Positions 5,341-63,400 are shown, counted from the first letter of the stretch. The stretch: 64,000 nt of DNA from Iphione sp. A-MEVVRFRX5 (GCA_976226885.1 OZ320313.1:115630001-115694000); one strand, 5' to 3'. Notes: a model not told the origin generated them from the letters alone. Numbers and translations: made by a program.

Positions 5341-8300
5341 ACCAACATCAACAGCCAAAAACAATCCGTAATCAAGAAAAGGGTCGATGAAGGCCCTGAA
5401 CGATATTTGCTCTAATCAATGAGTTTATTACGAGATTGAATTATTCCTAATGTGACGTCTGTATTCGAGAATCCAATTATTCTAACGGATATTACTAAAT
5501 CTATAGACTGTATTCGAATTAAAGGTGATTCCTAACATTTTCAGTTGCTTAAGCTGAACTGAATATATTGTAAAGTGGCATTTATATTAGTGAAGTGCTG
5601 GGGGGTTGTGGTCGATTTATCAGCAATCTTTGGTGGATTTATCTACCCTAAGAATATACATTGATATCCCTAACTCTAAGCACGCCCTTTACTGTGTTTT
5701 GGATTGAATAACTGCAAACATCAAGGAGGGAAAGAGAAACAGAATAAAATAGTTAACAATAAGTTGACATACCTCGGCATATATCGACCCCGAGGAAGTG
5801 ATGATCTAATACAAAGTGTTATGAAGACTATCAAAGGAATTTAGGTCAAAACTTACCACTTAGTTCCCGCTAAAAAGCGTTTTATATGTATATAATAAGA
5901 GATTATGTGTTGTAGTTAACAGAAGGCTTGCATTTATGAGCAGCCCCATCTATTCATGATCTAGTTGAGTGAATCGTGTAAATAAAAAATACATTTGAAA
6001 TGAAAAAAAAACGATAGAACACTCATTCCTAGATGTTGTCTCCAACAGCAATCAGCGCCTGGCAATACGTTGTCGTTTATGGGAAAATGTGATGAAGTCA
6101 CGCACTCCTCCTTGTATGAGCAAGGTAAATGACCTTTGGCGGCGGCTCCCAGTCCACAAAGCAACAGCTGTTATTGGCCTCAGATGCAACTGGCTATGGA
6201 CCAGTTCGTCTCACGATGAGAGAGATAGCCAAGGACTCAATGACACGTAGCCATCCTGTTTCCTATCCATGTGTCCAGGTATCTCTTCTTAGGTTCAGCT
6301 CCCTTCTCTAAATACTTGCTAAGAAACCCATTACTGGTTGATAAGCACATCCCTATGAAGTAACGTGTATACGTATGTCTCCTTGGCCACTTTGTGTAAC
6401 TTTTGGTTCACACTCGGCAGTACATCATTTAGGTTCCATGTTGTGGAAGTGACACCGAAAACTAAAATTATGGATGTACTTCACAAAGTGTTTGCTCCTT
6501 GGCACATAGAATTTCAAGTGATGGGGGTTCGTGGGGAAGTACTCCTCTCTTGCACACACAACAAACTTTCATTCTGTTTAAAAACATTTCACAATAATTC
6601 TCAAGATAATTTTTGTTGTCTTTTCCGTATTACTGCCAATGTAGTTGGTGGCCATGCATTCAACATACAGTAAAACAGCCTTTGTAAAAGAACAGTCATG
6701 GAGTTACATCTAGGAGAAAAAATGTCAGACTCACAGCACTGTCCTCCCCTCACGTCGGTATGGTGCAACGTCCTCATGCGCATTTAAGTCTCTCAGGTGT
6801 TGGGGTGGTGTTTTTAGAATTGATTAGCACATTGATTGTGTTTTATTGTCTCCCCCTTTTTTTATCCATTCTCACAGTTGGTGTTCCAGTCCTAGTAAGT
6901 GTTTGTTGTACTGGCCTTGCGTGCGGCCGTCAGTTCGAGAACCCCAACTTAGACCAGCAGTGTTATTGTTCAATGAGAGAATTGAATATCCATTTTATAA
7001 ATCATTCAGAGTAGAATTAGGGACTCGCGTGCGAGCGCCGCGCAGAGGGAGAACGTGTCATTTGAATGTCGGTGCGGCTTGTAAAACACGGAGGAAGGTG
7101 CTCTGCTTATTGGTTCGTATGTTAGACGATCGGAGGTATGCCAAAGGAATTTCTTTATTATGCGTGGCCTTATGAATTTGTTTTTTTGTTTTAGAATTCA
7201 TTATTCAATAAAAGAAGCCTAAATCATTACAGTCTTTGAAAGAAAGACAATTGTTCATTTGCTAAAGTCATTTTCTAATCATAGACTGTCGTTTGCCAAA
7301 GGTAAGAAGACGCTGCAAATAGATGATTGAAAATACGTATGCAAGTTCAACGACACACAAACACACAACGGGCAACTCTGTGGTGTACTGTCGCCATGGG
7401 TAGTCTTTTCTGTACAGCCAGGCCCGTAACTAGCCCTCTTAAATTCCCAATGGATTTTCTCTCAGTCTAAATGGCGCACTAGGACACAGAGCTTTATTTG
7501 AAAATTGGGTTTATTTTCGAAGTAATTGTGTTTTATTCTTGAGAACGGTTCTATTGGTAACATTATTATATAATCTTGTTTACTCTAACAGTATGAACAG
7601 ATTCTGACATGAAAGTTCTGGTATGATTGACATTTTATAGCAAAACAGCTACATTCAAGCAGTGCTCCGTGACTAAACGCAGCACTCTCTAGCATTTGAT
7701 GATTAAATCTTCAGTATATAACCATCTCCTTTGCTTTGGTGTCCCAGAAGCATATTTTGGCATCTTTCGTGCGTTGCTTATAGACTGGAACTTATCTCTG
7801 TCCACGACGCTGAGACTAATTGATAAACAGATTAGGTTGCTTGACGGTTGTCGCTTGAGGTCCAGTCTCTTGGGGTTTCCTTGTATGTACAGAAAGCGGT
7901 AGGGCAAAAAAAGTAAAAAGGTCTTTTTTTAGATTTTTTTTTCTCTTCCTCCCAAACTCAGGAAAGTATACAGCTGGCGCGGCGGCATCACCCCAATCTA
8001 AAGACAGCGCTCTCCCCGCCAGCCTTTTCAGGAACTGCTTATCGGGAGCATCCCGCAAAAAAAATCTTTGATGGGAAGAAGAGAGTAAAAGAAATCATTG
8101 CGGGAAGACCTATGTCTCTGTCTGGGCATTAGGGGGAAACTCGGCCCCATATTGTCTGCGTCCTTGTCTAGCCAATTTAAAATCTCATCTTCGCTCGTCC
8201 ATGGTTATGCTGCAATTTTTCGTCGAGTGTAAAATGCCTCCCGAGGCGGGACTGATTCGACGATTACGGGCTCGCCATCTTTACTTCAGGTCGCCTGTGT

Positions 8301-11300
8301 AGTGATGAGACTATCTTGTTACTTTTCTTCTTTTCCACTTTAGACTCCAAGCATCGGGAAATAGTATTTTATGAGCCCATTGACGTGGTCACAGTTGTGT
8401 GTAACACATTTTGTGGAATACGAAGTAATCTCCTGTTTTTGATTTTTAAAAAAAGCCTGCATGTGATTATACCGGTTTGTTTTCCCCGAAGGAGTAGCAC
8501 ATACCGCCTTATCCTCATGCAAATTACACATGCGACTCTACTCCCCATTGCTAGTGTTGCCTCGTGTTTATAAACACGTAATGGATTTTTCAAGTCGGAG
8601 CCCCTTGTGATTAACAGTAAGATCTACTTGGTGTAATTATCAGTCTAAATGAGTGGCCCGGTAGTGTGGACCGTAATCTTTCATTTCTGATTTAAATTGC
8701 AGGGATAGAATGCCGGACTTTACCAGCTGATTGCGATCTCTTTTTTATTGTAGAGAAGCAAGGACTTTTGAGTTCCAATCCCCGTTGTTTTTTTACACTA
8801 AATACAGATATATACAGTGAAGGAAGTTAGATTGAGTCTCGTGCTGGAGCCTCATTTATAGGCACATATGTGAGTCCGATTTATTTCTCCCTCGGTCTCC
8901 AATTTCCAGACAGGATGCAAGTTGGCACTGTTCACGAAGGTGTCCAAAGACTGCGAGTAGCCGGCCAATCCCCTACCTGTCCAGGCACAAGACGTCCTAA
9001 TGAAACGTGTTTTTTTTTTTTTACTCTTTCTTAAAGATAGACATGTCTACCAAGAGGCAGCGGTGTAAACCACAAAGCCCAGCACACGAACTATACTAAC
9101 ACGACCATTACTACCAATACCTCCGGCAGCGCCACCGCATTCGCTCGGCCAACATTCCCTTCTAACCTACTGGTCATCCTCAGGGGCCTGCCCGAGGATA
9201 AAAGAGGAATGAGGGTCAAGGAAAGCGATCATGTCGCTCCCACAGCGAATGAACGTTGTGGTTGGCGCCTCATTTCGCCGCATTTCTCTGGCCCTCCCTC
9301 TCATTGCCTTTGATCTATGATCACGTGTCATTCCCTGCCTGCGCCACGCTGAATTTGTCCCGATTATCGCTCGGCCATCTACGTTCATAGCCTCAGACTA
9401 GGAGCAGGAATCAAACCGGCTTTCTTGGGAGCGGCCCTTGCTGGGCCCATAATACCCTGTGGACATGCCATTCGTGAGAATCACGACGCCCTGAATCTAC
9501 CTCATTCTTGCCACACTCAAGAAGTAGTTAGGTATAACCCCTTCCTTCCTGCGAGGTACTACTCTCTGCGTCTCATACCAAATCAACCTGATCTAATTTT
9601 CCTCCACTGACCATGGTTTACTTATTGGAATGTCAATATTGGGGATGCCAGTCCTCACGCATTCCGCTCACAAGTTGCCACAAAAGCCACAACTCACTGT
9701 GCTTGCTGCTACTCTATTCATCAGGGCCCCCACAACCCACCTCCACCCTCCCCGTACATTTTGCCCACGCACACCATGTGTCCCAACATTTTCAATGTGG
9801 AGCCTACGCATTTTATACGAACAAGAGACCCTAGGAAAGAAGTCAAACACAGATTACAAATAAGGCCCATAGGTTGGTCAGCGGGAAGTGCCGTAACACA
9901 CTGCCTTCAGGTGGACGAAAGGGGCCCCATTAAGGCTTATTTGGGCGCAATGTGCCTGGTCCCGCCCCTCATAAAACCCACAAAAGCACATCTAGACATG
10001 CTGCGATCTGGCGGTTCTTTCCGGTGGCATGTTGTGGACCTGACACAACGTTGCCGGCCGGACCACTATCTAATAGGACGTGAAGGTTGTGCTTAATAGG
10101 TGGCTTGTCAGACCAAATATCCGCACGGCTCGCAGGCAGCGGAGAAGGACAGATCAATGAACCTGGCGACTAAGAGGGTCACTGACAATCAAGTGGCGCG
10201 CTGTCGGGGTAGGTGTGCTTCCTTCTCCCCGCCTTGGCGATGTAGGTGGATCGATGAGGCGAACACAAGAAGTGTTTTACGCGTCTAATATGTCCAGCTC
10301 GACGGCTTCCATCAGGCCGCACCATGCTTAAGCAGCGGATGATCCCGAGAGAAGAGGCATCGAATCTCAGTCTCCCGTCTGTCCAACATCAGGCACACAG
10401 TAACTACTGGGTAAAACGTGGTCCCCTTTTTGATATGCTTGCCATGCTACGCCAGGCCGACATGAACCGGTCAAGACCTTGACTGATAATGATAAAGGTC
10501 TCATTATTTATCTCTACTTTGTCTACAATTTATGTGGTTAAGACCCGTCCCTTGTTTAATGATAACGATATACATTATTCATCTGTATTTTCCTATTAGA
10601 TGAACTGTCCTGTAAAGCAACCGATATTAAGCTCGGTTGATTATTTTTCCTCTTCAAAACTGATAATACGATTTACTATTGCATAAATTCTTCCTCCTCT
10701 TCTCCCTCGCAGGTGTTAAAATATTCTAGTCGATGTAGGCATATAACTGCAAAAGGGAAACCTTTCGTCATGATGAGCGGAAACGATTTACCTTCGATTA
10801 GAGCACTGGATTTTTCACGTTCCCAATGAATAACATTGGTAAAATATGATACATGTGTATACTGAAGAAAAGCAAAGTCTCATTTTGACATTTATTGCAA
10901 TGTAGGCACTATGCCAAGCAGGCTTATAAATAGCTAGGGCTCCGCGATATGAGGGGGAGAGAAGAGGAAAGGAGGGAAACAGCAAGAGAGGAAGAGACGG
11001 ATAGTCATTGGAGGGAGAGTATGACGGAAAGATATAGTTCTGAAAAGAAACGTCGGAGTTGGGGTATGGAATAGGGGATATGGAGACTGGTGATGAAGGG
11101 AAGAGAGGGACTTACAGTCAAATAAAATAATACCACAAAATAGGCCACGTAAGAACCATCATGGGTTACAACTTTTATTCTATCAAAAATCTCCCCTGGA
11201 GGCTGCTAATTCTCTTTCTACGCAATCCACGAGTAGTTTCATTCAAGATAACAAGTGGTTCATGAAAGTCTGTGTTTCCCTCTGCCACTCTTTTCATTCT

Positions 11301-44900: not shown

Positions 44901-47763
44901 TTTCCTATGACTATGAGGGTTCACCCATTATGTATATTCAGGAAAAGAATTGAAAAGAGGGATGTCTCGCATCGTCTTTAATCTAGTAAAAGCCTAATTT
45001 AAGTTGACATGGTGCCTGATGGAGCACTTTGGAAAACTGTGTGGTACACTGCCTAGAGCAATACCCAAGTGGTGACACTGAAGCAGAGCAATGGTAGCGT
45101 CATTGCAAAATGCACGTAAGCCCATTAGGATATAATTTGCTGATCTCGTAACCGCGTACCCCGTTGCCTCTGGTACGTCAGGCGATTTCAAATCGGTTTT
45201 TCACATTAAAATTGGGAGCCATGTATTCAAAGCATGAAGGTCCCCTCAGAACAGAACTGTCAAAGGATGTTAAAATCAATTTACCCTCCTGTTATAGTGT
45301 TTCTATGCACATATTTGATGGCCACCAGGAGGGCCGGTAGATCTCAAACGGTTCCCCTGCGTTACTTCCGACAGTTGGACGGAAGCCACCATGGTTTCCC
45401 TCTCCTGAAAACAACATCTGAGGATGCTGGAAACGGCTCTCCAATTGCTCAGCGTATCCTACACGTAAGAAACATAGACGAAAAAACACTACACATGCAA
45501 ATCAGCAGCGGTAACTGGGAAATCCGTTCACTACTGTTTATTTTGGCTCGTTTTTAGGAAGGCAACACTAACATGACCCGCATTTCAATCCTCAGTGAGT
45601 TTAGCAATGTCGCGTCGGTGAACCGAAGGGTTTCACGTAGAGAGAAAATGCATCTCACAGTGTTTCTTACGAACCGGCTTACTAACGGTGAGATAAGAAA
45701 GTTTAGCTAGTCAGTGTTGCCGAAATACATTGACTCATTTCAGCAAGGACCCAATCCGACTTCAAACAGTCCTTCCATTGGCCCGGAATTTAGACGGAAA
45801 GGCGAATCCTCGAGGGAAATCAAAAACACCTATTATGTTCCGAAATGCGCTGCGCATAGATTTGACTGACATCTATATCTACGGCATAGGGTGCTAGGAG
45901 AATATACCTCAACCGAAACAAGATTGAACTCAAGGCGTATTTAAAAACGGTGGTTCCTCAAAACAAAAGGTTGACTCCTGTGGATAAAATGAACATTTAG
46001 TTTTTGCAGTCAAAGAATATGTCTTCAAGATCACCATTCCTCATATTCATTGGATGTGTCTTAGGTCCCCTGCAATGTAACTTTGGCATTTCTGGTTAAA
46101 TAAACCGTATGGTTAGGTTCACAAGGACAATTGATGCCTTTCTTTGTGATCTCGTGCGCATAAAACGAAATTATTGGGTACATTTGGTTATTTTACTGGA
46201 TGGTGAGCGATTTTAACTTGTTTCCACGTGCTCCTATTTTCTATATCATCTTAAGCACTATGATTCTGATGCTCGGAAAGTAAACATTTTCTCTACGGTT
46301 AATGTGTTACACTGGTATGCTTGATACCGATTTTATTCTGCTTTGTGGGCTCATGTGGTGTGTCTGTCGCAGCTGGCAGATACAGGTTTTCATGAAAGGC
46401 TTTATAAAGACCTTTTGGAAATGTCGCTACCATCAGTGTCAAAGACATGACAGGTACGTTGGACAACATTCCACTATTTCATCAGATAGATAACCAGAAG
46501 TTCTAAGTCGTTGGGCTTTTCGTCTCGGCCATGTCTGGTGATTTCAGTAATGTTTCGTAAAAAGCAGCTGTGCACCCATCATCAAAAACAATGGTACACG
46601 TGCAGAACTCGTGTAATATGGTCCTGGAATCTCTTATTTATGACTGAATGTCCTTTTACTTTTCGATAAAATAGCATTCTCTTCCAATTAAACATGATAT
46701 TGTTCCCGAGAATCATGTCTTCCTGTAATCGTCGCCTTATGTCTGAAGTAAATTGTAGATAGCAGAGATCTTTGGAAACTTTCCTTCGTGCAAAAAGTTC
46801 GTAAATACTAATAGATATTTAATCAAATATTTAACATCTATACTTCCTTCCTAAAATCCTTTTTGCTATTAACGTTGAAGTATGTAATATATACATGTTT
46901 ATATATCTTTTTTCCACTACCATATTTCTATAACTCTAAATTTCCTGTCTAGTCTGTGTGAAACTTGCAAGAACAAGAAAAATGCTTGAAGGATCCTGGA
47001 GAAGCATTATGTAATATCGTAGTATTATATAGGAATGATGTTTCTTGTTGTATTAACATTGAAAAGCCTCTATTTTGACTGGAATATATTTCGAAGATAG
47101 TAAGTCTGTATAAAATATGTATATATATTGCAGGTAAACATAACTAAGGCGGGAATTATGAAAAATTGATGTAACTTTATTATTAACAACAGACTGCGTA
47201 GCCTTGCATCTCTCACTGAACCTGTGAAAAAGGGCAACAACCTATACTTTCTCCAGATCGCACTTCGAATGAAAATAAAGACATCGTTGTAAGTCTGTGT
47301 GATAATTACTGGTATGACAATTTCGTAAAAGGTATTATAAATATAGCCCCTCCCCCCCTGAAGTATTTCGTCTCGATTTGGGTCACTTGTAAACTCACTT
47401 TGTTACCCATCGTAATGCTTGACATGGTCACCTCGAAGACAACGTTGACATTGAAGACGTCGCTGACACTATGGTGGTAGAGCCACACGAGCAAAACAGC
47501 TACAACAACAAATGAGTAAAATACCCTGCAGGAATCAGCCAGTGCCGCCTCGACTGACGCACCACTATGGGCGGCAGGTTCTGATCACAATTGTCGCCAT
47601 TAATAGAAAAGGAAAAACAAACCAACAGAAAAACAGGAAAAGGGCGAGTTCTTGATACACTCCAGACACTTCGCTGTTATTGTCGATGATCTTATAACAC
47701 GTCAGTGGAGGGTGAGCATAATTTAAATATGCAATGTGTGTATGTGTGAGAGAGGTTCAGACG

Positions 47764-47781
47764 ATAATAATAATAATAATA
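47764..47781. repeat. (ATA)n microsatellite just downstream of the nAChR stop codon (putative 3'UTR)
   Basis: ataataataataataata. Confidence 0.85.
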
Positions 47782-47813
47782 AAAGAACAGACGGGCTGGC
47801 AATATGCGGGCTG

Positions 47814-47960
47814 CTAATTGACCTCAAGTGGCTCTCGGTCGTCGTAGAGTGTGGGAGCTTGGAGGATTATTCCGAAGGTACCCACCACGCATGCGGTGGT
47901 GAAGATCCACAGGAAAAGACGGTCCAGCACTAGGGCCACGTACTTCCAGTCTTCCTTAAT
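47814..47960 (-). CDS. nAChR last coding exon ([48 protein letters not shown])
   Basis: 147 nt; TTGCAG acceptor in phase 0; TM4; TAG stop. Confidence 0.95.
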
Positions 47961-50900
47961 CTGCAATGGAATCGGGATGGGAGGATTAATCACTCGCCTA
48001 ATTAATTAGCTGTTGAGACTAGGCGCCTTGCTCCCAATGTGTAATTGGTTGTTATGCACCAAACACAACCTATTAGACTTGGAGATGCGGCGAATATACT
48101 GCCGGATTGGTCGTTACAGGGCCTGAGGAATGCAGGGTCCACGTAGCCACTAAATCAATTCTACAAGCTCATTGATACGTTTGACTGGGTTCAATAAAAT
48201 TTCATTAACTTTCAAAATGGCCATGGAACAATAATTTTGCCCCCCTCTTTTCAATAGCCAAAGCTTTTATAAAATTCTTGTGATTCGTAATGGTGTTGTG
48301 AATCATTTCAGTGTCACGCTCCGAGCAGCAACCTTTTCTGAGAAAAAACTTCATGACTCATCATGTCACATTCTTTAGATTTGAAACACTAATTAAAACC
48401 ATAGTCAATCTTCAACACCCACTTTTGTCTGTAAATTGTCGAAAGGGAAACAACCGTGTTGATGCAATTAATTCTAAAAGCGTTCATTCTGGGGGCTTTT
48501 AAATTTCATAATTTCCATTCGATAGATGGACCAGTTGGTTGTTGCAAGTGTCAAGACAATCGTGCTGTTAATTATATCATTGCGATCACCATTTATTACT
48601 CTGCAGATCAAGGCATACATATGTATTTCGTAGGAGATCAGGGCGGTACGACATCTACACTTGCTATAACAATTACTCGGTAAGGATTTCCTGTCATTCT
48701 AAGCCTGTTGTCACCAATGGGGGAACCCATCATATTTCAGTGAGGGACTAAATCTTTATGCTCTCATATCATATTTCATTACCTAAAGACCCTTTCTACA
48801 AATACCTGATGAAGTACAATTCATTCGGCACTTATTGAAAAGAAACCCGACCGTTGTAGAGTACTCCTCCCACCATGTCACTCTCTGTGGGACAATAAGC
48901 TCCACCTCACGCACGTCAATGACAGCTATGGCGCCGTCAATATGCCTATTATCAACCAAGATGTCGACTGAAAGCTGACTGCTCCTGACACGCGGGACAG
49001 GATCAATTGATCATTCACTTTGCCTTGGGGCCTTTGAACGAACGACCAATATTGCATGGTGTCCGTAATCATTGCACCCTGGTAGAGGATGTCTTCTACC
49101 CTGTAGTCACAGAACACATTGCAAGTAGACCACTTGTCACATGATAAAAAATACCAGCGCCCTGTCCCTATCATCGACACCCATTTTGGGACCATATGGG
49201 ACTTCAGTAGAATGGAAGTAGCTAGTTTATAACTAGTTGATAACTAGTGCCCTTTATATTCAGCATAAAGTGGACACCTAAAACTGTCGTCTAGGAGACT
49301 ATTTTTGACATACCTAATGCCGTTCTGAGGCCATTCCATCATCTTTATCGTAGAACACCTTTCAACTCATTGGAAGTCTGAATACAATGCTTTTACAAAG
49401 CGTAAGTTTATTTATTCATATCTAAACCCTACCCTACTGTCTGCCTCCTTCTTTTTAGGATGAGTGAGAGACATAGTTTGCAAGAAGAGACGCCTGCCGG
49501 ACCTGCCAGTCTAGACACGTTTCCCATCAACCGGTGGTAGTGTGGTACTGAGGTGTAAACTCTCGTAAAGGTCATGTCACCTAGAAAGCTTCCCCCTATG
49601 GATCATAATTAACTGAGTAGGATCAATGACAAGACTGGACTTTACGGGGTGCCCTTGGGTATGAGAAGTATTGTTAAGCTATATTTAGAAGATTCGTAAC
49701 AGCAGAAGGCAACCTGCGCTGATGGGAAAGTCATTATTACACGAACTCATTTAAGTACGTTAATAATGAGGTTTCTGTCTTCGCCATGGTTGTGTGTTGT
49801 TTTCCCATAAGCTGACTTTCTTGAACTAACGCCATGGAGAACCTTATCTTTCCTCTCGGTAGACATGTCGCTATTTTTGAAGGGACCTACGCGATCAAAA
49901 ATGATATTGAATCTGCGCTACGGCATCAGAATTTTGTATGGTATTCATTTGTGGCCATACGTTCGAAATTACAGCGTGAAATAATTTCGGGTGCTTGAAC
50001 GTGAAAGAAATTCAAATCGGGCAGAGATCAGTTCTGACATTCTAAAGAAGTTCTGTTGATTATCGGCTTCGTCTATGTTTAAAAAGGCACGACTTCAAAG
50101 AAAGTGAAGTTGGTGTATTACAGCCTACAGCCACACAAACCCTCTGTAGCCTGCAACGTGAGTAAGGATCGATCACAAATGACTAGATGTTGTTTAGGGA
50201 TGGAAACATTTCTGTTCTTTGTCACAATACGAGCTAATGAGAACCATTGCAAGAGCCTTGTCATTTTCCTCACCGTACCATATTGACTTATCTCAGATTT
50301 AGATTGTAAGCCAAGAGCTCCATGGACAGATTGTAATATATAAATGTTTCAACGTACTATCGCTGGCGATGTGGATGCATTGTTCCCCCCATTTCACCAT
50401 CTACATTAAGAACGATACATTTATGGCGATTAATTAAGGGGTTATGAAAATCTATTTACAACACTGCCTGTTATAAAAATACCTAACATAAAGATCTTAA
50501 TGTACCATCTTCCGTAGAATTGAGATAGGTCGAGTTCATATAACAAGTAGAGGGAACACTTACTTACATTGCAGAAACATTGCTAGCAGGTGAAATTCAA
50601 CCCAGATTATTGAAAGGTGCATGGTGCCTATAGCAGAGGTTGTAGAGTAAGAGGGTTATTCCGACCGACGAACCAGACTTACATTTGAGGCATCATCCTC
50701 CTCCTTGAGATGCTCAGCAATGTACCGAACCCCCTCAATCGCCTTTATCACCTCCGGCGTGTAGTTAGCCCGCGCATGGAGCCCGGCGCCGAAGTCGGCG
50801 TCCATATCGTCCGTCCCTCCCGACATCATGCCCGAGTAGTTCCCCATATTGTCAAAAGTCAGGTCTCTTGACAGGCGCCCACCGGCGCCGGCACCGGCCA

Positions 50901-53900
50901 CTTCCCCGCTGCCGCCGCCGACGCTTCCGCCGCCGGCGCCGTAAGAGTCGCGGATTTCGACGCCGTTGCAAGTGCGGACGACGACCTTGGGCGCGCGGTC
51001 GCGGTCGATGTGTGGGCGGCGCATGATGAGAAGGCGCGGCAGGATGTTGAGAAAGACCTTTCGCACCCAGGGCGACATAGTGTGGGTGGCGGGCGATCGG
51101 AAGTGGACGTTGAGAACAATAACGGTGACGATGATGGAGAGCGTGACGAGGATCATAGTGAAGAGTAAGTATTTGCCGATTAACGGCACGACGAGGGAAG
51201 TTGGCGGGATGATCTCGGCCAGCAGCAGGAAGAAGACGGTGAGCGAGAGCAGAATGGAGATACACAAAGTAATCTTCTCGCCGCTGTCCGACGGCAGGTA
51301 GAAAACAAGGACGGTGAGAAAACTGATCGCCACGCAGGGGATGATCAGATTCACCGTATGAAAGAGGGTCTTGCGCCTCATCGTAATATTGAAGGTTATA
51401 TCTGGATATGGTTCGCTGCAGCAGGTATAATATTTTTCGTTTTTGCGAGCGGGAACGCTAAGTAAGTCCCATTCAACGGACCGATAAAAGTCCTTCAGAT
51501 CAATGCCATTGGATATGATATCTAGATCACGTACGCCGGCCGCCTCTTGACCTATGTGTTTAAGGTCAACTTGGTAGCCATCGTAGGTCCAAGAGCCGAA
51601 CTTCAGAGTACATAATTGTTCGTCGAATGGGAAAAACTCAACGTTTATCGTGCAAGAACTCTTGTAGATTGCTGGCGGCTCCCAGTGCACCCGTCCGTCA
51701 GGGTAAAGTGTTGCTTTCGTCATCAGTGTTACCTCGTAGTTACCATCGGCACTGCAATTGTCATAGATGGACATCCAGGGTGTGCTCAGCTACTCAGGGA
51801 AATCATGCATAGACCTTCCCGGTCGACCAGGGACAGAGTAGGGAAGACAGGCGAGAATGGCAGTGGTCCTTGTTCAAGGAATTCCTTTTATGGAATATAC
51901 TTCTGAATGTAAATATGATGCTTTATGGTACCGATTACTAGATCCAGTAGCAAATCACCTCGTAGGCAATTCTACAAGGAGGGCAACTTAGAATAAAGGG
52001 TACGTTGGGCAGGTCCCAACGGTATATTTTATATAGTAAAACCAATTTAGAGAACATGGTGACAGTTAAGAGCACAATATGTCTGGTCCTATTTGCAGTC
52101 TTAATTCTGAGTTACTACTGTACATCACGGGTCATACATGGAGACGACATTGCAGTCTAGTATGAGAGAAAGTGGAATTTCATAAGTGCGGCCTCATATT
52201 GTTTGTATGGGGAGTGGGTGTAAAGCTTTACTGGCTATGCAGAGATACCGCGGTGGTACTACAAATTTCGGTTAGACATTTGGATCTCGTGGTGTTCATG
52301 TGGACCTAGAAATCGGTTACCCTTGGGATATTCAAGACAAGAAAAGGATAGAACGCTTCGGTCAGGAAACGTATCATTTTTTATGCACCAATTTCCTAAT
52401 TTCCCAAGGCAATTGTTAGCAATGACATCAGTTTGGACGACCAGGCTGCCATTCTTGCTGCCCACAGTTTCCAAGGAACAGAACAAATAATTCAGTGCGA
52501 CAAGCAGCAAGCAAACCAACATCACTTGATATTCAAATGCAGTTGTCATACAGATTAAAGCACAATCAGGTGGCTACTCAGGTGAATCTAAGGCATGCAA
52601 AAGGTTTGAACAGATCATCGCATTTTTAACGTGCTAGACACATTTCAAAGTGTCTGCTTAGTACAAGCCCCTTCCAGTCATAATTGAATTTCGATTATTA
52701 TCCTAATATATCATATGATAATGCGTCAAATAACCAACTTGAATACTGAAATAATATTCATACCAATGAATACGCGAGCACAAGAAATAAAATGAGGGTC
52801 TTACATTTATATGTGATTCATTTTGGATTATTGACAGTCTGCTGTCAGGTTTTTCTAATGATTTATGAATATCAATTCTCTTCCAATATGCGAGCTTCAA
52901 ACAACTTGCGCTATGGCCAGAAACACATAATTTTGATCGGAAAAACCAAGGCTAATTTCAGGGGTAATGGAAATCTGATCCATTTTAAATCAATTTAGGA
53001 GCCAATTTGTCAAGGCCATAATATTTCACTTCACAAATGGATTTTTCCCACCAATCTATCTTAACAGGGAGTGAAATGATCTTCGAAAATGCCTCTCCTT
53101 TCTTTCTCCGTAGGCTATGGGGAGGGGGGGGGGTAATTTCGCAGTAGTAGGAAATCACGAAGCAGCGCATGCAGATAAAAGGTGCGATCACGTAGACGGC
53201 CTGAGAACGTGCGGGTGGCGAAAGAGAAGAGGCTCCATGCGATAGTGAAGTGGAATTGTGTGCCCTGCACAGCGCCGATGAGGTGAACAGGCGAACTAAT
53301 GATGCCTCAAACGGCTACGTTACAGTATTCGCACCTCTTTCGGCCGGCAGAGGCTCACTAAGAATAATCATCACAGTTCACTGTCAGCGCAGCTGTGCAG
53401 GCACAGACAACCAGAAACGGTATAAATAAGAATACTGCGGCCCGAACTACAAGAAAAAACAACATAAGAGTAACAAGAACAAATAACATGTGCTGACATT
53501 CACACAGAAATACTGTATTCCTAAAACGTAAACGGGGCACACACAGTGAGATCTAAGTGAAAAAAATATGAAAAATAAAAAGACATGAATGCAAACAAAA
53601 CCGGAGAGAAGTGCGGTGCCTGGACTTCTACAGGGTGGTCTGGTCAGTATAGGAGAAAAGGAATAAACAGCGTGTGAGGGCCATAGAGCATGCAAGTGGT
53701 GAAAGGGCGCATAGATTCGTCGATGGGAAATGGATTGAGCTGCTCAGAAAATCCAGCGCAGGCATCATAGTCCGTGCCTCTCCCGCCATTTTCCAGCGGT
53801 CGAGGGATTACATTCATATAACTCCATTCTGCTCATGCCATTCACACAACACTCCAGGGGTTCGTGGTGGCCATCTGACCCCTACTGCCTGAGACAGACT

Positions 53901-54865
53901 TAGGGTGTCTCCCTGGCCAGAAAGAGTGATGAGGCTATCCAGTCGGGGTGATGTGGTGTTCCGCTCTGGTCTGAAAGAAATGGCTTCCTTGGGCTCCTGT
54001 CTTAAGTATAAAGAAACATGCTTAGCTTACGCGCGGCGCCACCGGGCTTGAAAATCTTCGCTCTGACTTTTGGACTGCAAAAGATAGAAAATCATTAATT
54101 GTTATTTTTTTCCAGAATTCCCAGCATGTCCTGTAACGACCCATCCGTCTTCAGCTAAAGCAACTAAAAACACAAGCATAACATCACATTGTTCAGGGAG
54201 CGATACATGGTGAGAATTATTCTCCAATGACCCTTCGCTTCGTCCACGATGGTGGCGATTGCATTCTGGCTCTTATTGTACTTACTTATTGAAGAGAACT
54301 ATCTCTGGCGTCCAAATAGATGCGGCGGGTACGTGGAGACTGCCTATACCTCCGTAATCTGATGGTCTCCACCTAAGACTCATATCCTGCCAGATCTTCA
54401 AACGGAAGATAGTCATTGTCTCTGGGTTAAAATTCATTTTATAATTGAGTTTAACTCGATATTATTCCTCGCACAGGGAGCCCAACCAGGTACGTAGAGT
54501 TAGTTCTTTGAGGATGTCACGAATCACAATGTTAATAGGTACTAACGAATAAGTAGAACGTTACAGCCGTGCACCCAAATTCTCACCGTTTTAAAGACAG
54601 GATTCTAAGTTTTAATCTTTAGTATAGAAGATGTGGTGTTATTACCGTGACACCGTCAAAGCCGTTGGAAAGTCTACGTTGGTTGAAATACTGTGTCTAT
54701 GCCATCGACAATCCGATGATGTTTTGCTCATTGCTAAACAAATGCGTTTACTTACTTATTGTAGAGTACAATATCTGGTAGCCATATTTCCTCAGACGGC
54801 ACGTACAGCCTATTTACTCCCCCGTACTGGTTAGGGTCCCATTTTAGTTTGTAGTCATCCCATTC
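47814..54865 (-). CDS. Nicotinic acetylcholine receptor alpha subunit, cation-type, 5'-partial: [54756-54865 OR 54286-54395] + 50683-51751 + 47814-47960
   Basis: Loop [11 protein letters not shown]; Cys-loop [15 protein letters not shown]; loop B FGSWTYDG; loop C vicinal cysteines [11 protein letters not shown] (alpha subunit); TM1-TM3 with [23 protein letters not shown] (GEK, cation-selective); MA/TM4 [20 protein letters not shown]. All junctions are GT-AG and in phase. Upstream exons were not found in 54866-64000. Confidence 0.96.
50683..51751 (-). CDS. nAChR large exon: loops E/B/F/C, Cys-loop, TM1-TM3, Gly-rich cytoplasmic loop
   Basis: 1069 nt; TTGCAG|T acceptor; AAT|GTAAGT donor; matches ORF 50656..51774 minus its intronic ends. 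Confidence 0.97.
54286..54395 (-). CDS. nAChR loop-A exon, copy B, putative mutually exclusive alternative ([37 protein letters not shown])
   Basis: 110 nt, open frame, 19/37 aa identical to copy A without gaps; AA|GTAAGT donor; AAG acceptor (in-frame CAG 9 nt downstream). Confidence 0.85.
54756..54865 (-). CDS. nAChR loop-A exon, copy A ([37 protein letters not shown])
   Basis: 110 nt; TTTCTTGCTGGCAG acceptor; AA|GTAAGT donor; phase 0 to 2, joining T-GCC-GAT-GGT of the next exon. Confidence 0.95.
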
Positions 54866-55029
54866 CTGCCAGCAAGAAACAACAATTTTTTCTAGACATA
54901 TTTAAGAAAAATAATTATAACACATGTGTGTATCTGTAGGAATTCATTAGTGAACAGTGAAACAACAGGACACGGCCAACAATAAGAAACACCATTCATT
55001 TTCTAAACCCAAACAATATTTTTAATATA

Positions 55030-57460
55030 CAGTCAGACTGCAGTAACCGGAGCATTGATGTTAGTTTGAAAATACTCTGGATACCAGATATTCCGTATGC
55101 TGAAATCACTACACATGCATCTCCTGGCAGGGAAAACTTGTGTAATAGTACAGTATTGGTGAACTATTATATTGAACATATATCTATTCTAATCACTACA
55201 GGAGCAAAACCTGGTGGGGAAAACGTGCATAAAAGTCAAGTATGGTAGAAATGTCATATTTTAAATTATGTTTTTCCTAATGAACAAAATGGACATAAAT
55301 CAGTTCTGAACAGTCCAGAAATCATTTTATTAAGCTCAAAGCATATCTTACAGGTATAACATTGTTGGAAAGAGTGAAATATTAAATTACTTGGAATTGA
55401 AAAAGTCTTTGAGCAAAGTCTGTCTACAACTCCTCTGTGAGGTCTGGGCCTTATGTAGGATTCCATGAAGGAAGGGGACTCTTTCCATATCCTTGTTGTC
55501 CTCACAGTACCTCACCAGGAAATTCACTGATCTGGTATCTCTTTCATGGTTATAGGAGGTGGTGGCATCTCCTGTCTCTTGCTCCTCCTCTGTGTCCCCA
55601 CACACCTCAGGGCCTCTCACTAGTGCCAGTAGAGCATCATTGGTGAGTTCCCCTGAGGTCTCTGCAGTGGAGTCCACTTCTGTGAACTCCTGGGCAGACA
55701 TCATTCCTTGTGACTCCTCAGGTGGCAGTGACTAGAGGAGCATCAGGAGTTCAGACAAGGACATGTCCTCCTCATCCTACACATCTTCCACATGTCTGGG
55801 CTTCCCAGAGAGAATGTCAGTGTGCCTCCAGCAGTTCTTGATGGTGGTTGGAGTGACAGCCTCCCAGGCCTCATGCACCATGAGAATTTCCTTTCTCATG
55901 TCAGCTGTCATGGGGTTGCCTTGCTCCACACACCTCAAGAAGTGCCTGACCAGCCTTCCCCCATACTGGGCCTTGAAAGAGGCAATGATCCCAGCATCTA
56001 GAGGCTGGATTTGGGAAGTGGTGTTGCGGGGCAGGTGCTTGATGGTGATTTTGGGGAAGGTCTTGGATGTTCTGTGACTTCCAGTATTATCACAGAGTAC
56101 CAGGTGGTGGTGCCCCTTGGATCTGGCCCTGGTGTCAGGCAACTGGAGGAAATCTTCCCAGAGGATGGATGTCATCCAGGCCTTGGTGTTATCCCTGTAA
56201 TGCACATACATCCCTGGATCAAATGTCTTTCCAATATATCTGGGCCTTGCAGCCTTTCCTATGAGGAAAGGCCTCAATTTGTCACTTCCAGTGGCAGTAC
56301 AGCAGAGGGCCACTGTAACTCTGTCTTTGCTCTTCTTCTCTCCCTTCACAGGCCCAGTAGGGAGGGTTAATGTTGGTTTCAGCCTATAAAATAACCCAGT
56401 TTCGGCCACATTGTAGACATCCTCTGGATCAAAGCCCTCAAGCTCTTGGTGCAGCTTCAAGTGCCTGCCGCATACGGTGGACTGGTTGACACTGCCAGAC
56501 TCCCTGTGTTGTCTGTACAATTTTATTCTATGGCATTTCTTGAAGCAGCTTATCCACCCTTTGCTATATGAGAAGTCTTGGATCTGTAGTTCGTCTCTGA
56601 GCTGTCTGGTTTTCTCAATGAGCATATCATGACTGATATTTGTACCTCTGCCTCTGAAATTCTGAAACCATATCAGCAATGCCTGTTTGAGCTTATTCTG
56701 CTTGAACAGGTAGGGGGACCATGTACAAGAGAACTTGGTATCCTCAGACCCCATGGATAACCAGTGCGCTGAATGCTTAGGATGTCCAATGTGGTTGACC
56801 TGGAGAGAGCAAATCTCCACTTGGTCTAAAACATCTGAGAACATGTCAGATGTGCTTTCTTTTATTCACAGAGTTCCTTCTTTTGGACATTGGATATGCA
56901 TATTCTTCATCTTTTGGAGTCAGCTGAGATATCGTGGTTGCTCCAGGGTGAATGGTAAAGAATGCCTGGAGGGTCCAGCTTATATCATCCTCCTAGGGCT
57001 GTAGTGATTTCAAGGCTTGACAAGACAAGACAATGACTGGGGAAAGACTTTCACAGTGTGCAACTGCTATCTGGCCCTCATAAACTTAATCTTTGGTTAG
57101 GGGAGGATGGCAGGAGTTACTCTGACCATGGATATTCATTTCATTATGAAATACAGCCCTACCCGCCACCTCCACTGTGGGCAGCCTGTGTTATTTGAGC
57201 AACTTGGCCATCGCACCAGTTGCACTAATGCCAGGCTTATCACAGAGGTGCCCCCACCATCAAACTAATATCTGTATCCAGTTAACTGTGATTACTTTGT
57301 ATATAAATCAATTTAAAATGGCTTGAAATATGCTCCGGTTGTGGATACGGGGGTCCAGATATGTAGTACAACTTATAATGAAAATAGTCTAGTCCCTGCA
57401 TTTCATTATGGTTAAAGTGACATTATGGTTACAGGGTCTCCAGTTACCATGGTCTGACTG
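55030..57460 (-). mobile_element. pogo/Tigger-family (Tc1/mariner superfamily) DNA transposon, full length (2431 bp) but defective
   Basis: TA on both flanks (55028-29, 57461-62); imperfect TIRs CAGTCAGACTGCAGTAACCGGAG vs CAGTCAGACCATGGTAACTGGAG (18/23 identical); internal transposase pseudogene. Confidence 0.9.
55387..56935 (-). pseudogene. pogo/Tigger transposase pseudogene (CENP-B-type HTH, DDE_1-type catalytic domain, C-terminal PIP-box-like motif)
   Basis: N-terminal HTH remnant QKKELCE*KKAH...LSRSTTLDIL with stops and a frameshift; ALLIWF and FSYSKGWISCFKKCHRI; YNVAETGLFY (first catalytic D is A), LCDNTGSH and QPLDAGII (DD30D); two in-frame TAG stops near 55777 and 55732; ends RQTLLKDFFNSK. 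Confidence 0.9.
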
Positions 57461-60394: not shown

Positions 60395-60448
<54 letters not shown>

Positions 60449-60484
60449 ACTCTCTCTCTCTCTCTCTTTCTCACTCTCTCTCTC
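60377..60484. repeat. (CTC)n followed by (CT)n microsatellite
   Basis: Directly visible; creates the spurious LSLSLS ORF 60231..60728. Confidence 0.95.
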
Positions 60485-63400
60485 GTTCCTCTTTTTTTTG
60501 GTGAGGTGCCTCTATGCTGGGTCTATCATGACGGAAATAATCTGTCCACGAACGGCAGGCCCTCTGGTCATAATATGGACCTCAGTAATGGCCATGGGTC
60601 GAAGACATGCAACCACTTGCTTTTTATTGGCTGAGAAACTCTCGATTTGTGCTCAATATCCGGCTGTGAAGCCAAGTCGAAAGATGCCGCCACATAGCAA
60701 GGCGGCCATCAAATGGAGCAGGCAATAACGACCGGTTCTCCTCAGGTCTGACTGAGTGGTCTTGACAAAGTGACGTATTCTTTGTGGTAATGGGGTATAT
60801 TACTGTTACAAACGTACTGTCTAAATTGAAAAACCTGTCTATTTTCCTGTATCTATGTGTGCTACCGAGTCGTATCATACTGCCTGAAGTAACAGGACAA
60901 TAACAGATATAAAGACACTTAAGATATGAACACCTATCTGCAAGTAAAATGCGGGATACACTGATGATTATACCCAATATATAAGCATACATTTACGCCT
61001 TTTTGTTAATTGGCATCGATGCTTCTTTCGTGTCAGATATGGTGCTGATTTACAACAAAAACTCATACCGACCATCCGTAAAACGGTTGAAATATAGTTA
61101 GACGCAACAAAGCAGCAAGTCGGCTTTGACACCTATTTACCGATACGGTTGTCAGTGCCACGTCGCCTCCCCGCTTGCCGAGTACAAAGCCAATCAGTGA
61201 CGATGAGGTGGCGCCCTCGGAGCCTACCAGCGCGCCAATCTAGTCTTCTAATTTTCTCATGTTGCGGTATTCAACCCGTGTAAACATTGGCCAATAATTG
61301 GCGCGATTACTATGAAGGGTCACGTCCATGATCAGCCTCCCTCAGTCGTGGGCGCCTATGTGACTTTGCCTGCACGTCCTACACCCACCCACCCACCACC
61401 TCCAAAATCACAGCCCACCTACCCAGCCCGGTGTTCAATGTGGAATCGCAACCCGTCCGGAGGCAAGAAAAATACATTGTGAGTCGCCATATGACTCGGA
61501 GGTGGCTTTTAAAGCTGGCATTTTATGGCTGTGACAAGCATAAGCACGAGCTGGCTGACTGAGATAAAACATCCAATAGACGGCAAGACCTTGTGTCTAA
61601 AGACGTTAACCCGGCGTTCGCCGGATTCCCTAAGCCTGTGAAGCATAGTCCTGCATTCTGGGGCAGGCGACCCGGCAGGTCAGCTCTTGCACATTGTTCC
61701 GCTACGGACCGGTGATTTGGGACCAGTTTTTCCCACCTGGCAATGATTCACTTCACCGTAATGTCAATATGTATGGGCGCTTCCGGTAGGGAAAATCATC
61801 TATTTTTTCAATTCGGTTTTATAAAGGAGATTCTAAGGATAGGGGCAAAAGATCATGTATACATATGTTCAAAAAAACTTTGAACGGAAAGCAATACGAA
61901 CGGATACCAACGACAATTAAAATGCGAGGGCGAGATTTTAAAATCTATCAAAGAAGTAGTTGCCTTTTTATGATACATTGCTCCAACCAATGTATATTGC
62001 TATCTTAGAGGTCCCTTTGTCACATTTTGTAAACCGACGATGCCTTGATAGCAATTGCATTGCTTGACGAGATTCTGAGTAAGGCAACTGACTGCTCAAG
62101 CCCCAGCGGGAGATAACCCGCGCCAATAACGGTCACACAGGTATGATCACTTTCTAGATGTGTCCAGACAAAGAATGGATTGTACGACTATACCTTTCCC
62201 CCAGGAGATGGTTGCAATCTACGAAAATCGGTTTATGTAGTCAGCCTGGTGAGACGACTAAAATTGCCCCTGACATGCCTCTGAGGAAAGGAAAAACGTA
62301 AATTAATTTCCATTGCTTCAGGATTCGACTCACGCTGTCGTCTACTAGAACGTGTGGGATAACTGTCTCTTAGGCAAATGGAGTTGAATTTAGGAATTAA
62401 AAGAAAGACTAAATAGTTTTATCCCACTGAAGAAGAATGAAGAAGATTTGGGTTCACCAGAGTTTCTAAGAGAAAGCCGAATTGAGACGAAAATCTTACT
62501 GCTTTATGAATTGGAAGTAGTTGATATTAAGTAGATTATGACTGAATCGAAATCACCGTATCTGGATGTTTCACGGCTAAGATTTGTAACTCGCTTAATA
62601 ATAGCAACGTCCTCGTGCACATAGGAGTAATATAGGAGAGACAGCTCCTTTGTCTCTCACGATTGATAAAACAGATTAGTGTTTTTTACATCTACTTGTC
62701 GGGGTAGTACTGATACCAAAAATCTCCGATTGGAATTCCATCCAATCTGGACTAAGGATTTAGGGCAACATCTACTTCGGAGAGATGTGCCCTTAGATAA
62801 CTCAGTTCATATTTGAGTGAAGGATATGGATGAGGACAGCAAGGTTAGATGGCGACAATGTGAGAAGAAATCTTGTCAAGCAAGAAAGTTCAACTGACTC
62901 TGCTACATACACAACGCAAAGAGAGGGACCATACGTAGATGGCATTTTCAATGGACGTTAGAATGCAGATGGCCTAGTGGTGCCTAGAGGTCCAAAACGA
63001 AACGCCGCTAACTGTGCAGATCAATCACTTCGTCGCCATGAACCGCACCAGACATTACTCATGAAAAAAGCTCCTTTCATCCTTCCTTCGGTTCCATTAC
63101 TTCAGAGACGAGGGGAGAGAACTCGAGCGCCAGCAAACACTGATGACGCTAGTCCATACACAGTAGACCTGCTCCGGCCTGCCGCCATGTTAACTGCTAC
63201 GGATAACTATAGGAACGGCTTGGTGCTGACGCCTCCCTAGCTCCTCTCCCTTTGCATCGGCCCTATGAATGATTTTTTAAAGCTTCACGCCAGCAATGAA
63301 TTACTTATGCTGATCATGGGCGATGAAGGGAGGAAGGGCAAATGCCAACCGAGGCAATTAGGAGTGCAGATTCTTGCCCGGCGGTCCCCCCAGTGATGAC

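Follow-up and report, generated by a model that had tools for sequence, protein, structure and literature searches.

A tandem-duplicated and probably mutually exclusive pair of loop-A exons in an annelid-type nAChR alpha-subunit gene, with counterparts in molluscs

The 64-kb stretch of DNA analyzed here (64,000 nucleotides, referred to as the window) contains two adjacent homologous exons, 4A and 4B, in a nAChR alpha-subunit gene. Comparison with other loci and with annotated mollusc isoforms makes it very probable that these two exons form a mutually exclusive pair, the product of a tandem duplication, in an annelid-type gene of this family; a single origin of the pair before the split of annelids and molluscs is the likeliest history. 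The swapped segment would comprise loop A of the agonist site and the main immunogenic region (MIR) loop. A side finding is a conserved element in the intron downstream of 4B, which is a candidate ADAR editing complementary sequence (ECS) for the second transmembrane segment (TM2).

Results

Anatomy and reading frame of the exon pair

Exon 4A lies at 54756..54865 and exon 4B, the alternative loop-A exon, at 54286..54395, both on the minus strand and separated by an intron of 360 nt (54396..54755, minus strand). Each exon is 110 nt long, runs from phase 0 to phase 2, is preceded by AG, and ends in AATAA followed directly by the donor GTAAGT; the acceptor of 4B (aAG) is the weaker of the two. 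The sequence-only reading had given the lengths, spacing, phases and donor ends of the pair, and these were confirmed from the sequence. Its figure of 19/37 identical amino acids without gaps also holds if the common split Asn codon completed by exon 5 is counted, the peptides being identical at 18/36 ungapped positions otherwise. Nucleotide identity is 61/110, with matches at 24, 25 and 10 of the 36 first, second and third codon positions, respectively. Third codon positions are thus saturated between the two exons, from which it follows that the duplication is old. When the whole 64-kb window was searched by tblastn, the 4A peptide found 4B at E = 1e-12, and neither peptide found a third exon-4 copy (two matches only).

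Either exon alone fits both flanks, while inclusion of both or of neither breaks the frame, as the sequence-only reading had claimed. The reading frames of all four combinations were inspected: 4A joined to 4B meets a stop 6 codons into 4B, and with both exons skipped the fourth codon of exon 5 is a stop. The joins of 4A to exon 5 and of 4B to exon 5 are both open, and both read ...NNADGNYEV. The downstream exon begins at 51751, the position previously given for it, and this first base of exon 5 (T) completes the Asn codon left as AA by 4A or by 4B. The pair consists of neighboring homologous exons that agree in length and in splice phase.

The host gene and its other exons

Exon 5 (50683..51751, minus strand, 1069 nt) is 90% identical to P0001/P0002, which bear the domains PF02931 and PF02932. 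It encodes loop E, the Cys-loop, loops B and C (the latter with YTCC), and then TM1-TM3 and the greater part of the cytoplasmic loop. In the last exon, TM4 and the C-terminus are encoded at 47814..47960 on the minus strand; the tblastn match runs from 47960 to 47817 and is followed by the stop, and the 5' boundary is approximate. Together these exons hold the features of a nAChR alpha subunit, namely a Cys-loop of the form C-x13-C, a YxCC pair, four transmembrane segments and the GEK ring before TM2, with the Cys-loop, YTCC, TM1-TM3 and GEK all within exon 5 and TM4 in the last exon. The YTCC in loop C marks the subunit as alpha-type.

The nearest protein matches to exon 5 are genomic ORFs (87-90%), followed by the nemertean Lineus (74%), then the annelids Owenia and Paralvinella, then molluscs and brachiopods (65-66%), and then arthropods. 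In a tree built on the exon-5 region, lophotrochozoan and ecdysozoan sequences form separate orthogroups, and the window belongs to an annelid group together with L001, L002, Paralvinella, Dimorphilus and Owenia. A lophotrochozoan host, which had been posed only conditionally, is borne out by this tree, and by its sequence relationships the host gene encodes a neuronal nAChR alpha subunit of annelid type.

No match to exon 3 or to the N-terminal part of the receptor was found between 54866 and 64000, so that intron 3 would be longer than 9.1 kb and exons 1-3 are not among the receptor exons of the window. This part of the window contains a CT/SL-type simple repeat near 60400-60560. A second gene copy as the source of 4B was rejected, given that the 64 kb contain two exon-4 matches and no more than one exon 5 and one TM4 exon.

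Conservation and selection on 4A and 4B

Three annelid-group genomic loci (L001, L002 and L003) and a Logan contig (L010) were compared with the window, and L002 and L010 were used to assess the conservation of 4B. In L002 the A exon is found at 6628 and the B exon at 7087, with an intron of 349 nt between them; in L010 the corresponding positions are 484 and 1033, and the intron is 439 nt long. All A and B copies in the window, L002 and L010 are 110 nt long and have AG/GT sites. The 4A peptide is identical to that of the window at 35/36 positions in L002 and at 31/36 in L010, and the 4B peptide at 28/36 and 23/36, respectively. Changes in 4B by first, second and third codon position number 7/6/22 against L002 and 13/5/23 against L010. 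Between the window and L002, pN and pS are 0.198 and 0.80 for 4B and 0.012 and 0.55 for 4A, exon 5 is near saturation (dS ~1.1), and the flanking introns cannot be aligned. Non-synonymous evolution is about 15 times faster in 4B than in 4A. When the 35 changes that separate 4B of the window from that of L002 were placed at random, 0/20,000 placements left an open frame with 28/36 identity.

The low pN relative to pS, the bias among codon positions and the outcome of these simulations together show that 4B is under purifying selection at the protein level, far less constrained than 4A. Between the window and L002, purifying selection has maintained both exons, and the earlier claim of such selection on copy B is thereby sustained.

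The survey of related genomes proposed in the sequence-only reading gave a mixed outcome: B is kept in the same order and spacing in L002 and L010, but L001, L003, L006/7 and Lingula have A only. These A-only loci suggest that B is dispensable in some lineages or paralogues. L003 contains two nAChR genes of the same family in tandem (L003:10187-12184 and L003:17314-19202, ~7 kb apart), the first of which carries a single A-type exon 4.

Absence from several related loci would be expected if 4B were a pseudo-exon, that is, an unused relic of the old duplication that stays out of the mRNA in this species. The weaker aAG acceptor and the faster evolution of 4B than of 4A point in the same direction. 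A relic is hard to reconcile with a 110-nt length, open frame, AG/GT sites and loop-A motifs that are kept in three genomes despite synonymous saturation and unalignable introns, with an excess of third-position changes that 0/20,000 simulations match, or with the orthologous B exons that are spliced into full-length isoforms in molluscs (below). We regard it as exceedingly improbable that 4B is such a relic.

Residues of loop A replaced by 4B

Alignment to muscle alpha1 chains places the exon-4 segment at alpha1 residues 59-94, and the identification of the two exons as loop-A exons is upheld by this alignment. The segment covers W60, the main immunogenic region (67-76), strand beta3 and loop A from W86 to Y93. 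Loop A reads WLPDIVLY in 4A and WTPEIVLF in 4B, which corresponds to the changes D89E and Y93F.

The Asp at position 89, within the WxPD motif, serves to position loop B. Of the five aromatic residues that form the core of the agonist site, Tyr93 is the one contributed by loop A, and Phe at this position removes a hydrogen bond (PMC4621750). With Tyr93 changed to Phe and Asp89 to Glu in 4B, the B form is expected, by analogy with vertebrate mutagenesis, to differ in agonist affinity or gating, or in assembly.

Exon pairs of the same segment in molluscs and a nemertean

Equal-length RefSeq isoform pairs whose differences are confined to the 37-aa exon-4 segment occur in three mollusc classes (RefSeq X-isoforms are model predictions). 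They were found in the gastropods Haliotis (3 species), Patella and Biomphalaria, and among bivalves and cephalopods in Pecten, Mizuhopecten, Argopecten, Ostrea and 2 Octopus species. The Haliotis pair (XP_048255854.1 / XP_048255857.1) and the Pecten pair (XP_033749539.1 / XP_033749540.1) are each annotated as 'acetylcholine receptor subunit alpha-like 1'. Compared with the window, these pairs belong to the orthologous gene, concern the same 37-aa segment and have the same A and B hallmarks in a different phylum. Because the orthologous mollusc isoforms carry one exon or the other, the mutually exclusive reading of 4A and 4B appears well supported by comparison.

The mollusc A-type is recognized by a 21-residue hallmark, and the B-type by ..EVP..IWTPD/EIVLFNN, with I/L after GG and Glu replacing Tyr before VP. 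Further hallmarks of the mollusc B-type are W-T/N/S-P and the usual replacement of the loop-A Tyr by Phe. Haliotis B and 4B of the window share exactly the same 11-residue ending; position 21 distinguishes the phyla, being His/Gln in annelid B versus Glu in mollusc B. A protein-database search with the ORF around 4B gave no candidate, and one with the Haliotis B region gave 5 proteins, none of them informative; neither outcome was given weight.

The layout of the window recurs in the Patella genome, where A (21693) is followed by B (22256) and then by exon 5 (24243), and the A/B intron measures 453 nt. In the cuttlefish Acanthosepion pharaonis (L011), B is the copy nearest to exon 5, and no A lies between B and exon 5. 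The intron between 4B and exon 5 in this cuttlefish (L011:9968-10077 to 47443) is ~37 kb long, versus 2.5 kb in the window. Full-length spliced ORFs of the B type are present in Logan assemblies (P0024, P0052, P0079 and P0089).

Deposited Aplysia sequences follow the same pattern. AGI03861 ('type E') and AAL78649 ('alpha 2') differ at 18 residues, all inside the exon-4 segment, and P0150 ('alpha 1') and P0046 ('alpha 2') differ outside exon 4 only by P9A, W295L, V296L and G379A. Judged by this confinement of the differences to exon 4 and the near-identity elsewhere, Aplysia 'alpha 1/type E' and 'alpha 2' are evidently splice forms of one gene.

A gene model of the bivalve Tegillarca (P0209) holds both exons in tandem, which is an annotation artefact typical of such pairs. 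The nemertean Lineus longissimus has an equal-length pair at the same exon (X1/X2, P0138/P0009) with 8 differences, one member of which ends in LYGN; both members are A-like, which suggests a younger duplication or a homogenized copy. Two near-identical exon-4 segments in tandem were also seen in the alpha7-like models P0212 (a Logan contig, 194 aa), P0213 and P0224, and these are either further exon-4 duplications or artefacts of assembly or prediction.

One origin or several

In a tree of 57 exon-4 peptides, a branch separates all B-types, those of the window and L002 among them, from all A-type and single exons, ecdysozoan ones included. The branch uniting the B-types is weak (SH-aLRT 63/80 on 37 columns). 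Forcing annelid A and B together costs 9-15 log-likelihood units and is not rejected by the AU test (p = 0.17 and 0.32).

Annelids and molluscs might therefore have acquired a working mutually exclusive cassette independently, in which case the B features (Phe at 93, Thr/Asn at 87 and the loss of Tyr at position 21) would be convergent. Besides the AU result, the A-like Lineus pair shows that renewed duplication or homogenization of this exon can occur, and B is missing from many annelid-group loci and from Lingula. What makes independent acquisition unlikely is that the best tree unites all B-types at the cost just given for an annelid grouping, that the A-then-B order and an intron of 350-450 nt are common to Patella and three annelid-type loci, and that 4B of the window matches Haliotis B exactly over its last 11 residues. 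The exon tree, the common order and the similar intron size favor a single duplication; most likely, the pair arose once before the annelid-mollusc split and was then lost in several lineages and paralogues.

Choice between 4A and 4B

Under the mutually exclusive reading, each mRNA would join exon 3, which lies outside the window, to either 4A or 4B and then to exon 5. The gene would then yield two subunits that differ only in 37 residues, corresponding to muscle alpha1 59-95 and comprising the MIR loop, strand beta3 and loop A. Exclusivity would follow from the exon length, since 110 nt cannot be divided evenly into codons and each of the two wrong combinations runs into an early stop. By the exon-junction rule, mRNAs with an early stop are NMD targets. 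Products with both exons or with neither would be unproductive and are probably removed by NMD.

The base at position -3 of the acceptor is A in 4B of 3/4 species, and C or T in 4A. From these bases and the difference in evolutionary rate, we infer that 4A, which is almost invariant, would be the default exon, and that 4B, with its faster non-synonymous change, would be the regulated alternative. The choice is probably made by trans-acting factors acting on the weak 4B acceptor.

The stop that 4A joined to 4B meets within 4B lies well upstream of the last exon junction, and 4B might on that account be mainly a regulatory poison exon, one whose inclusion with 4A gives a stop and NMD and from which no B-type protein is made. 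A poison exon needs no conserved in-frame protein; 4B, however, keeps W60, WxP, YGG and WxP(D/E)xVL(F/Y)N with pN well below pS, and there are mollusc isoforms with B and without A. It is thus very improbable that this is the main role of 4B, and a mutually exclusive pair is the reading retained.

Several known means of enforcing exclusivity were considered. Steric exclusion is ruled out, as the 360-nt intron is too long for it, and incompatibility of U2 and U12 spliceosomes is ruled out, as both donors are U2-type GTAAGT. Comparison of the loci by blastn found no conserved intronic block beside 4A or 4B. A search for RNA pairing between 4A or 4B and the 1.5 kb on either side in four species returned only matches of z ~-3 at inconsistent positions, and a 15-nt inverted repeat between exon 4A and intron 3 is within the range of chance. 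With no conserved intronic block and no outlying or position-consistent pairing, competition between a docking site and selectors, as in the fly, is unsupported.

A candidate ADAR editing element downstream of 4B

The segment 53786..53851 (minus strand), 435 nt downstream of exon 4B, is the only intronic block conserved across the window, L002 and L001. Read from 53851 to 53786, it is 91% identical to L002, and a core of 42 nt is invariant in the three loci despite saturated synonymous sites. It has no Rfam match, and an Rfam scan of 47000-56000 found no families. Its exonic partner is 51231..51300 (minus strand), which encodes the TM1-TM2 linker and TM2 (24 protein letters). The predicted duplex with exon 5 is nearly perfect and ~70 bp long, with energies of -63 to -78 kcal/mol versus a mean of -26 (sd 5.8) for other windows, and pairing with TM2 is also found in L002 and L001. 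Third codon positions in the target are identical in 14/15 codons across the three loci, versus ~3-8 elsewhere. An intronic element that pairs with an exon, is conserved beyond neutral expectation and has a target in which synonymous change is suppressed is what characterizes an ECS, and 53786..53851 is a candidate ADAR ECS by these properties. The prime candidate site would be 51270, where editing would convert Thr (ACT) to Ala at TM2 2'.

A recognizably homologous element occurs in Lingula intron 4 (L009, ~8590-8625) and pairs with its own TM2. The TM2 2' residue is Thr (ACT) in these genes and Ala in paralogous loci without the upstream intronic element. The Logan spliced ORF P0024 and the cuttlefish genome model P0035 are identical at 371/373 positions over the conserved core, and at TM2 2' P0024 has Ala versus Thr (ACT) in P0035 (L011:47866-47991, Acanthosepion pharaonis), a difference that would be compatible with editing in a cephalopod. 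P0024 also differs from the cuttlefish genome by K/M in exon 4B, a non-A-to-G site, and may therefore come from another (sister) species. The cuttlefish intron between 4B and exon 5 contains two candidate TM2-complementary elements, at ~31440-31530 and 45500-45610 (L011).

Discussion

The swapped segment combines loop A, one of the three loops on the principal face of the agonist site, with the MIR loop, and the two best-known loop-A residues, Asp89 and Tyr93, are both changed in 4B of the window. Should the A and B forms prove to differ in affinity or assembly, this switch would be a means by which molluscs and annelids tune cholinergic synapses, a route that, if real, is unused at this position in insects or vertebrates. 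We tentatively entertain a further possibility, which we hold to be somewhat doubtful: that a loop-A pair inherited from the last common ancestor of annelids and molluscs, more than 500 million years old, stands beside a comparably old ADAR site (Thr-to-Ala at TM2 2', directed by the ECS in the intron preceding exon 5), and that the B form is of lower affinity or assembles differently. If true, one gene would give four receptor variants from two binding sites and two pores.

The full texts that could be searched yielded no description of a lophotrochozoan exon-4 cassette, and the candidate TM2 editing layer did not appear in them either. The main survey of lophotrochozoan nAChRs treats introns and expansions and barely treats splicing (PMC6896357), and lophotrochozoan nAChRs have so far been surveyed at the level of gene counts only. 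The suggestion that such a cassette was not described outside arthropods thus stands for the searchable papers and fails for the databases, where RefSeq holds the mollusc isoforms and a pair is present in Lineus. The cassette is apparently present in databases and undiscussed in the literature. The annelid pair appears, from its sequence, to be the orthologue of the annotated mollusc cassette, and its annelid version is unannotated among the retrieved entries. If the splice-form interpretation is true, the Aplysia subunits named 'alpha 1/type E' and 'alpha 2' come from a single gene. Gene models that place 4A and 4B in tandem also call for caution in annotation, with at least one such case in a bivalve (Tegillarca P0209).

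Comparison with insect cassettes

In insect Cys-loop receptor genes, mutually exclusive exons are well studied and shape insecticide sensitivity. An exon 4/4' pair of the alpha4 subunit was reportedly described by Lansdell and Millar in 2000, and is said to be present in Tribolium, Apis and Bombyx. The sequence-only reading had offered this pair as the counterpart of 4A and 4B. Both systems are tandem duplications that give a core alpha subunit alternative exons for part of its ligand-binding domain, and both are old and conserved within their clade. The residues swapped by the insect alpha4 exons, however, belong to loop E or lie close to the Cys-loop (PMC2064938; PMC2045683; PMC8505678 Table 1). 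In the window, 4A and 4B encode the MIR and loop A (alpha1 59-94), and loop E and the Cys-loop sit in exon 5. The two cassettes therefore concern different parts of the ligand-binding domain, only the exon number is common to them, by coincidence, and the proposed correspondence was wrong.

The proposal of a deeply conserved protostome cassette is likewise unsupported within the limited sampling of ecdysozoans. The arthropod isoform clusters sampled (a thin ecdysozoan sampling) contained no B-type exon and a single, A-like type of exon 4, and the locus of the tardigrade Hypsibius has a single exon 4, with no B-like exon before exon 5.

Another point of comparison is insect alpha6, in which exons 3a/3b and 8a/8b/8c are mutually exclusive and swap loop D or TM2 (PMC8505678 Table 1; PMC1919356). 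As proposed here for the window, alpha6 combines exons that exchange a binding-site loop with A-to-I editing in the same gene. Unlike the pair in the window, those of alpha6 belong to the alpha7-like family and involve other exons, the neighboring 45-nt exon 3 being the one duplicated, and the two systems are not homologous.
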